NCBI GenBank assembly: GCA_033442325.1
Contig: JAWQFM010000026.1
Span: forward strand, 105,339-169,338
Length of the DNA: 64,000 nt
Direction: 5' to 3'
Origin: Salpingoeca rosetta
Taxonomy: Eukaryota; Protista; Choanoflagellata
Positions 34,073-36,151 of the stretch are shown piece after piece. Both the position numbers and the translations under genes were made by a program. The notes beneath the pieces were generated by a model, which had not been told where the DNA came from, made no database searches, and saw nothing but the letters and a program-made list of their open reading frames with translations. Every line of letters starts with the position of its first letter. The first letter of the stretch is position 1.

Positions 34073-36151
34073 ATGATGCACAGCGGCATGAGGCTGGTGG
34101 TGGCACTTTGCGCGGTGGTTCTTGTTCATGCAACAATGACACGCGCTCAGGACGTTTACACGCAGTTTGGTGTGCCAAACTCGAATGAGAGGGGCATTGA
34201 CGTTGTGACCGACGCTGAAGGCGCCACGTTTGTTCTCGCATACACGGACGGCGCCCTGTTCCCAAAGCAGACCGGCAGCAACGACATCGTGCTGATGAAG
34301 TATGGGCCCGATCACACCCAGCGCTTGTGGGGCGTGCAGGTTGGCACCGCCGACCCAGATCGGCCCTTCGACATCACCGTTGACCGCCTGGGCAACCCCA
34401 TCATCGCCTGCCAGCTCGCATCTGGGCTCGCGGCCCTCATCAAGTATTCCTCGTCCGGCACCCACGTGTGGACTAAGACGTTTGGACAGACAAGCGTCAA
34501 CGGCGTTGCCGTCGCATCTGACGGCAGCATCTTCTTCGTCGGCACCGCAACCGCCTCCGCGTCCACGCCGATCCGCCTCGTGAGGTGCAGCCCGCAGGGC
34601 GTGGTGCTCTGGGAGCAGAAGACCGGACAGAGCGGCGATTACGGCGTGGCCATCGACCTGGACCCCGATGACAACCCCATGTTCCTCGTCGCAGTCAACC
34701 AGGGCAGCACCTACTTCAACGGCGTCTACCGCTATGACGCACTCGGCGTGTTCAAGTGGTACCAAACGTTTGGGGCCCCCGCATCAAACACACCCCACGA
34801 CATTGTCGTGGACAGCGTCGGCGACGCCATCATCTGTGGTACATCCACCAACACATGGCCCAACAACCAGCACCTCGGCAAAGGCGACGCGTTTGTGATC
34901 AAGATTGATGGCATGTCGGGTTCAGCCATGTGGTATCGCTCCGTCGGCACGGTACAGGCCGATGTGGCGTGGGGCGTGACAGTGGATGGCGCTGACAACG
35001 TCTACATCGCCGGCAAGACGGAAGCGAGCATCGAGCCTGGCGTGTGGCATGGCGGTGCCAGCGACTACTTTCTGGCCAGGCTTGTTGGCCCGCAGGGCGT
35101 GGTGGAGTGGGTTGAGCAGTTTGGGACAGGCGACGACGACGTCGCACACGGCGTGACTGTCGACGTGTATGGGAACGTCATCTTCACGGGCTATGTCGGT
35201 GCGCCGGGCCTGTTCGATGAAGGGTTCCTTGGCCAGATGAACCTCGTTGCCGTTCCTGTCACCATCAACATGGGACCAACAACAACGACGACCACCACAC
35301 TCACACCACCAACAACCACCACCACCACCACCACGACTACTACTACTACGACTACGGCAGCAATCACGCCGCCGCCACCACCCAAAACAACAACAACAAC
35401 AACAACAACAACAACAACAACAACAACAACAACAACAACAACAACAACAACAACAACAACAACAACAACAACAACAACAACAACAACAACAACAACAACA
35501 ACAGGGGCCTGCAAACAACACCACAACAACCACCACTACGACAACAACAACAACAACAACAACAACAGGGCCTGCAAACAACACCACAACAACCACCACT
35601 ACGACAACAACAACAACAACAACAACAACAACAACAACAACAACAACAACACAACNNNNNNNNNNNNNNNNNNNNNNNNNNNNNNNNNNNNNNNNNNNNN
35701 NNNNNNNNNNNNNNNNNNNNNNNNNNNNNNNNNNNNNNNNNNNNNNNNNNNNNNNACAACACACACCACCACCACAACAACAACAACAACAACAACAACA
35801 ACAACAACAACAACCACAACCAGCAGCAGCAACAGCAACAGCAGCACCACAACCACCACCACTGCAGCAAATGGCGGCAGTGTTACCACGACTGTGCCGG
35901 CGGACAAGTCAACCACCTCGGGCAACTCTGGCCTGGACATTGGTGTGATCATTGGCATTGCAGTAGGTGCCGTGCTGGTGATGGCGCTGATTATTGCGCT
36001 GGTCGTCCGCTCGCGCAACCAACGCCCTGTCGACGACATCACACCGAATGGCCCGCTTGCCGTCACCACAAACCCGCTCTACATGCACACGAACATCAAC
36101 GCGAACAGCAACAACATCAACAACAACGACAACCGGTCGTCAGAGGTCTGA
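34073..36151 (+). CDS. Intronless type I membrane protein: signal peptide, 7 SBBP-type beta-propeller repeats, Thr-rich stalk, TM, NPxY and PDZ-ligand tail
   Basis: Repeats such as DVAWGVTVDGADNVYIAGKT, GDAFVIKIDG.SGSAMWYRSVGT and DVAHGVTVDVYGNVIFTG. (ACA)n poly-Thr stalk with gap and indels. TM IGVIIGIAVGAVLVMALIIALVV followed by RSR. NPLY at 36071-36082; ends SSEV*. Confidence 0.88.
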   Translation: MMHSGMRLVVALCAVVLVHATMTRAQDVYTQFGVPNSNERGIDVVTDAEGATFVLAYTDGALFPKQTGSNDIVLMKYGPDHTQRLWGVQVGTADPDRPFDITVDRLGNPIIACQLASGLAALIKYSSSGTHVWTKTFGQTSVNGVAVASDGSIFFVGTATASASTPIRLVRCSPQGVVLWEQKTGQSGDYGVAIDLDPDDNPMFLVAVNQGSTYFNGVYRYDALGVFKWYQTFGAPASNTPHDIVVDSVGDAIICGTSTNTWPNNQHLGKGDAFVIKIDGMSGSAMWYRSVGTVQADVAWGVTVDGADNVYIAGKTEASIEPGVWHGGASDYFLARLVGPQGVVEWVEQFGTGDDDVAHGVTVDVYGNVIFTGYVGAPGLFDEGFLGQMNLVAVPVTINMGPTTTTTTTLTPPTTTTTTTTTTTTTTTAAITPPPPPKTTTTTTTTTTTTTTTTTTTTTTTTTTTTTTTTTTTTTTTGACKQHHNNHHYDNNNNNNNNRACKQHHNNHHYDNNNNNNNNNNNNNNNTXXXXXXXXXXXXXXXXXXXXXXXXXXXXXXXXXXTTHTTTTTTTTTTTTTTTTTTTSSSNSNSSTTTTTTAANGGSVTTTVPADKSTTSGNSGLDIGVIIGIAVGAVLVMALIIALVVRSRNQRPVDDITPNGPLAVTTNPLYMHTNINANSNNINNNDNRSSEV
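35279..35862 (+). repeat. Coding (ACA/ACC)n trinucleotide repeat giving a poly-Thr mucin-like stalk
   Basis: Directly visible; includes a duplicated GGGCCTGCAAACAAC unit and an N-gap. Confidence 0.9.

Follow-up and report, generated by a model that had tools for sequence, protein, structure and literature searches.

PTSG_08546 of Salpingoeca rosetta, a predicted surface protein with an SBBP propeller head, a threonine-rich stalk and an NPxY tail

INTRODUCTION

Is the SBBP propeller gene PTSG_08546 of the choanoflagellate Salpingoeca rosetta a recent bacterial acquisition attached to a eukaryotic receptor tail, or a native gene with a long history in its host? An earlier note, made from sequence alone, had proposed the former: an intronless prokaryote-like propeller, horizontally acquired and grafted onto an animal-style tail. 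We analyzed the gene within a 64,000-nucleotide stretch of contig JAWQFM010000026.1 (positions 105,339 to 169,338; here, the window). A literature search on SBBP with choanoflagellate, on PF06739 and on PTSG_08546 found no relevant publication. We favor, and consider probable, the reading that PTSG_08546 is a native gene for a type I surface glycoprotein, expressed at a low level, whose product carries a propeller head on a Thr stalk, with a single membrane span and an NPxY/SEV tail. On this reading the gene is one of at least 13 SBBP genes in S. rosetta, and any transfer was old.

RESULTS AND DISCUSSION

Transcription and gene structure

An open frame running from ATG to TGA is present at 34073-36151 on the plus strand and, read literally, encodes 692 amino acids. 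The features assigned to it and to its transcript are as follows, in window coordinates.

33927..34072, plus strand: 5' untranslated region (transcript contig start at 33927; RNA reads from bin 33906-33958; no ATG upstream of 34073)
34073..34147, plus strand: predicted signal peptide, residues 1 to 25 (hydrophobic core; likely cut before QD)
34154..35269, plus strand: seven-bladed SBBP beta-propeller (PF06739, AlphaFold, match to CylK 7ron, blade HMM)
34154-34327, 34328-34468, 34469-34609, 34610-34756, 34757-34930, 34931-35107 and 35108-35269, plus strand: blades 1 to 7 (blade HMM)
35199..35963, plus strand: "intron" in the deposited model (its excision would take out stalk, gap and half the membrane span; donor unsupported by RNA reads or transcript contig)
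35273..35655, plus strand: Thr/Pro-rich mucin-like stalk, part before the gap (three-frame read and codon counts; transcript contig enters the stalk)
35656..35755, no strand: assembly gap, a 100-N placeholder inside the stalk (sequence letters)
35756..35932, plus strand: Thr/Ser-rich stalk after the gap and juxtamembrane segment (Thr frame is that of the membrane span and tail)
35933..36007, plus strand: predicted membrane span, 25 hydrophobic residues (sequence; RSRNQR follows on the presumed cytoplasmic side)
36008..36151, plus strand: predicted cytoplasmic tail, 47 residues and stop (NPLY at 36071-36082, SSEV at 36137-36148, TGA at 36149-36151)

The gene is transcribed weakly (RNA depth 1 to 6), and the stranded reads have the orientation expected for plus-strand RNA in a usual stranded library. 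Transcription starts at about 33927, and the first ATG of the transcript is that at 34073. Transcript contig X8 (1,485 nt) covers 33927-35271 and extends 140 nt further into the stalk. No intron was seen across 33927-35271, where neither the stranded reads nor the contig had joints or loose ends; read mapping took in 33800-35385, and the splicing result applies upstream of about 35410. The proposal that some 2 kb are intronless thus stands for 33927-35271 plus the 140 nt of stalk. Other long open frames occur elsewhere in the window, e.g., at 38010-44412 and 61161-63623.

Bacterial contamination was considered as a source of the gene and ruled out: PTSG_08546 sits on a 1.07-Mb scaffold amid (CA)n repeats, its GC3 is native, its propeller leads into a stalk, span and tail of eukaryotic type, and it was found in sequencing runs of four studies.

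The deposited model of PTSG_08546 is wrong. It describes a 416-amino-acid protein that starts at Met22, lacks both signal peptide and stalk, and has 35199-35963 spliced out. Apart from the deposition itself, this structure has in its favor the GT and AG dinucleotides at the borders of the proposed intron. However, neither the RNA reads nor the transcript contig shows a joint or a loose end on crossing the donor at 35199, and the contig continues into the stalk. The transcript begins well upstream of Met22, at about 33927, and its first ATG precedes that codon; the leader peptide that the model omits is also present in an ortholog from Tara Oceans data (below). Moreover, the "intron" conveniently covers the assembly gap and would halve the membrane span. 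We therefore regard a correct public model as extremely improbable. Since the model is without signal peptide and stalk, proteome-based surveys would misclassify PTSG_08546 as non-secreted.

Reading frame through the stalk

Thr codons occupy frame 0 up to 35503 and the +1 frame after GGGG at 35504-35507. Past this point the +1 frame holds mixed ACC, ACA, ACT and ACG Thr codons, and frame 0 reads as His/Asn-rich filler. A GPANN-Thr unit is present in two stalk copies, one with the GGGG at 35504-35507 and the second with GGG, and the slip is probably a one-base homopolymer error of the assembly. The single 692-residue frame is thus an accident of assembly, and its in-frame continuity hinges on the length of the placeholder gap. 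The single frame described before does exist at 34073-36151, but the slip and the 100-N gap make its literal reading untrustworthy. We infer the frame in 35504-35655 and the continuity over the gap from codon content. One gene is the best reading because the Thr frame after the gap continues into the membrane span and tail.

It is also conceivable, though improbable, that the locus holds two genes or a mis-join across the gap, with a secreted propeller protein upstream and an unrelated stalk, membrane span and tail fragment downstream. The undefined length of the gap and the frame slip leave room for such a break, and several S. rosetta SBBP paralogs do terminate just after the propeller, with no membrane anchor. 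Yet no stop follows blade 7 in PTSG_08546; the frame carries on directly into Thr codons, as does the transcript contig. Thr-coding repeat of one kind lies on both flanks of the gap, the flanks are on one strand of one scaffold, and the downstream piece has neither a start codon nor a leader peptide of its own ahead of the membrane span. A single gene is the reading used below.

The propeller head

The seven blades and the SBBP assignment proposed from sequence were both borne out. PTSG_08546 matches Pfam SBBP (PF06739) in four stretches with 44.2 bits (E = 1.8e-11; gathering cutoff, 20.5), and an AlphaFold model of the propeller has 28 strands (pLDDT 88.3; pTM 0.88) in seven W-phased blades. 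By blade HMM and W positions, the blades start at about residues 28, 86, 133, 180, 229, 287 and 346. Blades 5 to 7 are canonical, and blades 2 to 4 are short and degenerate. The match to NCBIfam NF047494, the equivalog for LipL53-type SBBP lipoproteins, is partial and scores 94.2 bits, far below the curated cutoff of 400 bits; the shortened blades 2 to 4 set PTSG_08546 apart from bacterial SBBP surface proteins. The UniRef name "Bulb-type lectin domain-containing" was dropped, as there is no B_lectin Pfam match at E ≤ 1.

Among solved structures, the best match to the propeller is CylK (7ron), with a TM score of 0.82 by query, an rmsd of 2.8 and 24% identity. CylK is a cyanobacterial Friedel-Crafts alkylating enzyme (PDB 7ron/7fh6), and its likeness to PTSG_08546 lies in the propeller: the alignment takes in about 390 of the 633 CylK residues, and the N-terminal domain of CylK falls outside it. 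That domain forms the active site jointly with the propeller. In PTSG_08546 it is absent, and because the propeller begins at residue 28, two residues past the leader peptide, we see no grounds to propose an enzymatic role.

An SBBP family and a marine ortholog

Besides PTSG_08546, the S. rosetta genome holds at least 12 SBBP propeller genes; these lie in long open frames and have seven blades in register. Twelve family members, PTSG_08546 and 11 paralogs, were scanned with Pfam SBBP, and 9 of them passed at E ≤ 0.01. Of the members found, at least 13 in all, PTSG_08546 alone has the order propeller, stalk, membrane span and tail. Given the size of this family, PTSG_08546 is no isolated, recent graft from a bacterium.

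An ortholog, P0276, lies on a Tara Oceans contig that also holds S. rosetta-like (CA)n DNA and ends in blade 5. It is 44 to 48% identical to PTSG_08546, collinear from the leader peptide, and grouped with it at 100/100 support in a 40-row tree; its N-terminal hydrophobic leader ends in A-QD. Profile scans of JGI metagenomes found no relative, either with an alignment of the propeller and the Tara ortholog (A3) or with the membrane span and tail. Word-index protein searches returned no eukaryote except S. rosetta itself, but they also missed its own paralogs, so these blanks carry no weight.

Origin of the propeller

A total of 44,533 representative proteins match the propeller, and every one whose source is named or whose gene neighborhood could be read is bacterial; the nearest ESM Atlas clusters are all 100% bacterial. 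The relatives are thus overwhelmingly prokaryotic, in agreement with the earlier statement that SBBP repeats are mainly so. Judged by its sequence, the propeller of PTSG_08546 belongs ultimately to the type seen in bacterial surface proteins.

Two hallmarks of a recent transfer, a foreign composition and a lack of counterparts in related eukaryotes, were not found. GC3 is 0.78 in PTSG_08546, 0.62 to 0.78 in the paralogs and 0.76 in its own tail, and the Tara ortholog represents a second eukaryote. As a recent or unique event, the proposed horizontal graft is weakened by the 12 or more paralogs, the ortholog and the native GC3. Evidence for the origin is mixed, as the relatives are of bacterial type; a bacterial transfer, if any, was old and is unproven.

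A more specific possibility is that this propeller came from a separate bacterial transfer, one that had no part in the origin of the remaining SBBP genes of S. rosetta, and was later joined to a native scaffold of stalk, membrane span and NPxY tail. Global alignment scores of PTSG_08546 are higher to bacterial propellers (250 to 380) than to its own paralogs (130 to 230), although regular, consensus-like bacterial repeats inflate such scores. A 40-row tree was built under LG+G4, with most bacterial rows dropped and ten added by likeness to the paralog profile. In it, a branch with 99/98 support separates PTSG_08546, its ortholog and bacterial rows from the 12 paralogs, but 16 of the 26 bacterial rows were chosen for their similarity to the query, and the paralogs form long branches. 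The same separation from the paralogs has 98 SH-aLRT in an 83-row quick tree. The nearest tree row, P0286, has a bacterial gene neighborhood, in line with the wholly bacterial ESM Atlas clusters. Against this, an AU test on the 40-row set, whose sampling is biased to the query, leaves a single clade of all 14 eukaryotic rows unrejected (P = 0.18). The native GC3 also speaks against a separate transfer, and because the ortholog is in another eukaryote, any transfer must be older than that split. The lack of a visible intron in the propeller might be taken as support, but the paralogs likewise lie in long open frames, so this lack is not peculiar to PTSG_08546. On balance we consider a separate transfer unlikely and retain the reading of a native family member whose transfer, if any, was old.

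Membrane span, tail and predicted function

The Thr stalk, single span, NPLY and terminal SSEV that had been noticed before could all be located in the sequence. NPLY is placed 21 residues past the membrane span, and S-E-V stands directly before the TGA (36140-36151), which fits the class I PDZ ligand pattern (S/T-x-hydrophobic at the C terminus). NPx[YF] past the span also occurs in 11 of 18 other S. rosetta open frames with stalk and membrane span, an enrichment somewhat biased by collection of these tails with an NPLY-containing query; one of the others ends in S-S-D-V. The heads of these proteins differ, e.g., EGF or Cys-rich domains. Since NPxY recurs on stalked membrane proteins with other heads, the tail is, from these sequences, a common native module of S. 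rosetta and no special graft. Possible readers of both motifs are encoded in the genome, with at least 95 PDZ matches and at least 19 PID/PTB matches.

Taken together, these parts suggest how the protein might work. The signal peptide would direct PTSG_08546 into the secretory path, and the seven-bladed propeller would serve as a putative ligand-binding head. The Thr-rich stalk, presumably O-glycosylated and at least about 170 residues long, its true length being hidden by the gap, would keep the head off the membrane, with the single span as the likely anchor. In the 47-residue tail, the membrane-proximal NPLY is a candidate handle for PTB-type sorting or endocytic adaptors, and the C-terminal S-E-V is one for PDZ scaffolds. 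As had been suggested, the protein may act in endocytosis, adhesion or prey recognition.

Comparison with known systems

Bacterial SBBP surface proteins (PF06739; Leptospira LipL53-type lipoproteins; Planctomycetota, Acidobacteriota and Myxococcota) share with PTSG_08546 the repeat family, the seven-bladed propeller and, by its predicted topology, extracellular display, with 28 to 43% identity along the whole propeller. Unlike them, PTSG_08546 combines a eukaryote-like signal peptide and a poly-Thr mucin stalk with one membrane span and a predicted cytoplasmic tail bearing NPxY and S-E-V, and it has none of the lipobox, PEP-CTERM, T9SS or Big/PKD modules that the bacterial relatives carry.

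The LDL-receptor family, with its YWTD propeller and its stalk bearing O-linked sugars, offers a likeness of layout in the membrane-proximal half: a beta-propeller is followed by a stalk rich in Ser and Thr, then by one span and a short tail whose NPxY stands about 20 to 25 residues past the span. However, the propeller of PTSG_08546 is of another family and has seven blades, and no Ldl_recept_b (YWTD), LDL-A or EGF Pfam match was found in it at E ≤ 1. From its domain content, the resemblance is one of design, not membership.

Teneurins, bacterial YD-shell/NHL-propeller proteins acquired in the choanoflagellate-animal lineage, are a precedent for a bacterial surface ectodomain as a eukaryotic membrane receptor (PMC6297184, PMC13018210). 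They differ in being type II proteins, and PTSG_08546 has neither their YD shell nor their NHL propeller nor their toxin-like C terminus.

Implications

Choanoflagellates are the closest living relatives of animals, and their surface receptors reveal which parts of the animal adhesion and signaling toolkit are old and which are borrowed. PTSG_08546 appears to place a prokaryote-type propeller on a scaffold resembling the membrane-proximal half of the LDL receptor, with a tail that proves to be a widespread native module among S. rosetta stalked membrane proteins. Speculatively, and with even less confidence than we give to a separate transfer, SBBP propellers might have passed repeatedly from bacteria into the choanoflagellate lineage; the line of PTSG_08546, which an uncultured marine relative also has, would then be a domesticated bacterial adhesin head on a native mucin-stalk/NPxY endocytic scaffold that recognizes and takes up bacterial prey or cues. 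S. rosetta is now genetically editable. Should the propeller prove to bind bacteria, the 13 or more genes of the family would be a set of candidate prey or cue receptors.

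Gene Structure and Transcript of PTSG_08546

The propeller part of the gene is 100% identical to P0001, the deposited Salpingoeca rosetta PTSG_08546 protein of 416 amino acids (aa), and the window (G000:C26:105339-169338) is part of a 55.4-Mb S. rosetta genome. The gene has the following features.

34073 to 36151, + strand: open frame, ATG to TGA
Start of that frame, + strand: hydrophobic leader, then ~375 residues of repeats
35656 to 35755: 100 N interrupting a long Thr-rich stretch
35933 to 36007, + strand: hydrophobic span of 25 residues, then RSRNQR
C-terminal of the span, + strand: tail of 47 residues, with NPLY at 36071 to 36082 and S-S-E-V directly before the stop

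A three-frame read placed Thr codons in the ATG frame over 35273 to 35503 and showed the Thr-coding frame shifting to +1 at GGGG (35504 to 35507). Between this site and the gap, frame 0 encodes a His/Asn-rich filler, and frame +1 encodes a Gly-Pro-Ala-Asn-Asn unit and then Thr runs. Since all four Thr codons are in use, +1 is the selected frame. In a second copy of the unit, at 35567, the site reads GGG and the frame is kept; most simply, the extra G in GGGG, a homopolymer beside the gap, would be an assembly error. The unbroken 692-aa frame is thus only apparent, because the filler frame is open by chance and the placeholder happens to be 100 N long. Downstream of the gap, the Thr frame runs into the membrane span, tail, and stop, and no separate start codon or leader occurs in this piece. 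The flanks fit a single continuous Thr stalk, with its continuity across the 100 N predicted and its length in the assembly nominal. The open frame and motifs described in the earlier note were largely right, with NPLY and S-E-V in the frame of the Thr stalk downstream of the gap, but the stalk sequence is defective (frame slip and gap). Five further assembly gaps lie in the window (12128 to 12240, 18967 to 19868, 23788 to 23887, 31696 to 31922, and 37846 to 37945); since several adjoin (CA)n or other simple repeats, gene models near them may be affected likewise.

RNA reads were placed on 33800 to 35385 only. Two stranded runs covered 33906 to 35283 at a depth of 1 to 6, oriented as + strand RNA would be in the usual stranded library, and at this depth no joints or loose ends were seen. 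A 1,485-nucleotide contig from a third run matched 33927 to 35271 without difference, its 140 further letters lying in a masked repeat. Contig and reads share a start point, consistent with transcription starting near 33927; the sequence holds no ATG between 33927 and 34073. Over the propeller no intron was seen, in line with the earlier note. The public model begins at Met22, and so lacks the leader peptide, and it splices 35199 to 35963, which takes out the stalk and gap as well as half of the membrane span. Since reads and contig cross 35199 unbroken, the modeled intron looks like a gap-bridging device; a minor spliced form may exist at the read depth of 1 to 6. At 33800 to 33905, ending ~100 nucleotides upstream of the transcript start, reads of opposite orientation (depth 12 to 18) mark a better-expressed, divergent gene on the minus strand.

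Propeller Fold

Several approaches support the seven-bladed SBBP propeller read from the sequence. Pfam SBBP matched at 44.2 bits (cutoff, 20.5), and an AlphaFold model from 41 aligned sequences (pLDDT 88.3, pTM 0.88) had 28 strands, forming seven four-stranded blades. Blade starts at residues ~28, 86, 133, 180, 229, 287, and 346 were placed with a blade HMM together with the W positions. The long consensus loop is missing from blades 2 to 4; blades 5 to 7 are canonical. Among solved structures, the top match was the propeller of CylK, a cyanobacterial enzyme (TM 0.82, 24% identity) whose second domain is missing from PTSG_08546. The NCBIfam model for LipL53-type SBBP lipoproteins matched partially, at 94 bits against a cutoff of 400, which places PTSG_08546 outside that equivalog. 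The UniRef name of P0001, "Bulb-type lectin domain-containing," seems unfounded, with no B_lectin Pfam match at an E value of ≤1.

Tail and NPxY Pattern

A genome search that used the end of the stalk plus the span and tail as query returned many weak matches, among which 18 other proteins have a single span and a Thr/Ser stalk. NPx[YF] occurred within a few dozen residues C-terminal of the span in 11 of the 18 (as NPLY, NPMY, NPIY, NPVY, NPTY, NPAY, NPVF, NPTF, or NPLF), a proportion somewhat biased by the NPLY in the query yet still far above the ~1% per tail expected by a rough estimate. Several alignments stop just past the motif, and one protein ends in S-S-D-V. Among five stalk proteins scanned with Pfam, one had EGF, one had Cys-rich ephrin-receptor-like/NCD3G-like matches, and three had no family. 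The genome has at least 95 PDZ and at least 19 PID/PTB matches. Because NPx[YF] recurs under other heads, the tail is a common native module and no special graft, and the pattern points to a sorting or phosphotyrosine motif general to S. rosetta surface proteins. Two more of the 18 have NPxP at this position. The tail of one stalk protein (L028, G000:C11:422160-422276, minus strand) carries three NPxY motifs and, between the second and the third, a putative SH2-like stretch (FIVRDS-type motif, by eye).

SBBP Family and Relatives

A six-frame search of the S. rosetta genome found at least 12 further SBBP loci. All occupy long open frames (500 to 1,179 codons), each with seven blades aligning in register. 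Pfam SBBP was found at an E value of ≤0.01 in 9 of 12 scanned members (11 paralogs and PTSG_08546). Loci L041 to L051 are as follows.

L041, G000:C11:1678844-1681765: two divergent SBBP genes
L042, G000:C28:324757-325662: SBBP locus
L043, G000:C17:990388-991017: SBBP locus
L044, G000:C17:1308736-1309425: SBBP locus
L045, G000:C24:650626-650955: SBBP locus
L046, G000:C16:1175056-1176153: SBBP locus
L047, G000:C5:782805-783248: SBBP locus
L048, G000:C34:119437-120177: SBBP locus
L049, G000:C36:115217-115657: SBBP locus
L050, G000:C29:295381-295809: SBBP locus
L051, G000:C9:1457385-1457840: SBBP locus

Paralogs have three layouts: a secreted type (leader peptide and a short, conserved N-terminal region preceding the propeller, which ends the protein), a type II form (N-terminal cytoplasmic part, membrane span, Thr stalk, and C-terminal propeller), and a single large multidomain protein. 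Within the family found, only PTSG_08546 has the order propeller-stalk-span-tail. The type II genes L047 and L049, on separate scaffolds, are near-identical (tree branch lengths, 0.02 to 0.05), which reflects either very recent gene duplication or a locus duplicated in the assembly.

An exhaustive profile search returned 44,533 representative proteins at an E value of ≤0.001 and 1,092 at ≤1e-30. Named matches were all bacterial (Acidobacteriota, Botrimarina, Sorangium, Oscillatoria, and others), and the closest ESM Atlas clusters were 100% bacterial. P0286, the closest tree neighbor, has a YCII gene on one side and an OmpR-type regulator on the other, in a compact contig. P0276 (268 aa), from a 1,150-nucleotide Tara Oceans metagenome scaffold, is 44 to 48% identical to PTSG_08546 and collinear with it from the leader peptide through degenerate blades 2 to 4, both leaders ending A-QD. 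Its contig (GC3, 0.74) opens with a (CA)n run, like S. rosetta intergenic DNA. P0276 stops in blade 5 with an apparent frame error and covers no tail; we read it as an ortholog in an uncultured marine relative. In P0299 (L054, an ENA metagenome contig), a DUF285 domain and Ser-Pro-rich linkers flank an SBBP propeller, with 41% identity across the stretches that matched. P0299 may be a further SBBP protein from a eukaryote (an alga).

Origin of the Propeller

Global alignment scores of PTSG_08546 were higher with bacterial propellers (250 to 380) than with paralogs (130 to 230). A maximum-likelihood tree (40 rows, 398 columns, blades in register) paired PTSG_08546 with P0276 at 100/100 among bacterial rows, with the 12 paralogs across a 99/98 branch and other bacterial rows on the paralog side; an 83-row quick tree was concordant. 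Three points weaken this evidence: 16 of the 26 bacterial rows were selected for their likeness to the query; the paralogs sit on long branches; and bacterial repeats, being regular, give good scores with any SBBP. An AU test did not reject one clade of all 14 eukaryotic rows (lnL difference, 19.8; P = 0.18). GC3 was 0.78 for the gene, 0.76 for its tail, 0.62 to 0.78 for paralogs, and 0.56 for the bacterial neighbor. Judged by its matches, the propeller type is mainly prokaryotic in distribution, and origin by transfer is plausible. Any transfer would be old, having come before S. rosetta and the Tara organism split, and composition is fully native. The horizontally acquired graft proposed earlier has only partial support: prokaryotic distribution and tree placement favor it, but the AU result, native GC3, and common native tail do not. 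A separate transfer of PTSG_08546 itself may have occurred, with sequence evidence on both sides.

Proposed Role

From its anatomy, we infer that PTSG_08546 is a type I surface glycoprotein. Its leader peptide would be cleaved and its propeller displayed outward on a stiff O-glycosylated Thr stalk; in the short tail, NPxY could recruit sorting or endocytic PTB adaptors and S-E-V could bind PDZ scaffolds. The design resembles that of the membrane-proximal half of the LDL receptor, but the propeller is unrelated. Prey, matrix, and cell contact are candidate roles. Useful by-products of the analysis are a corrected gene model and the NPxY tail pattern of S. rosetta surface proteins. PTSG_08546 is of interest, though not exceptional, within a family that has expanded in this lineage.
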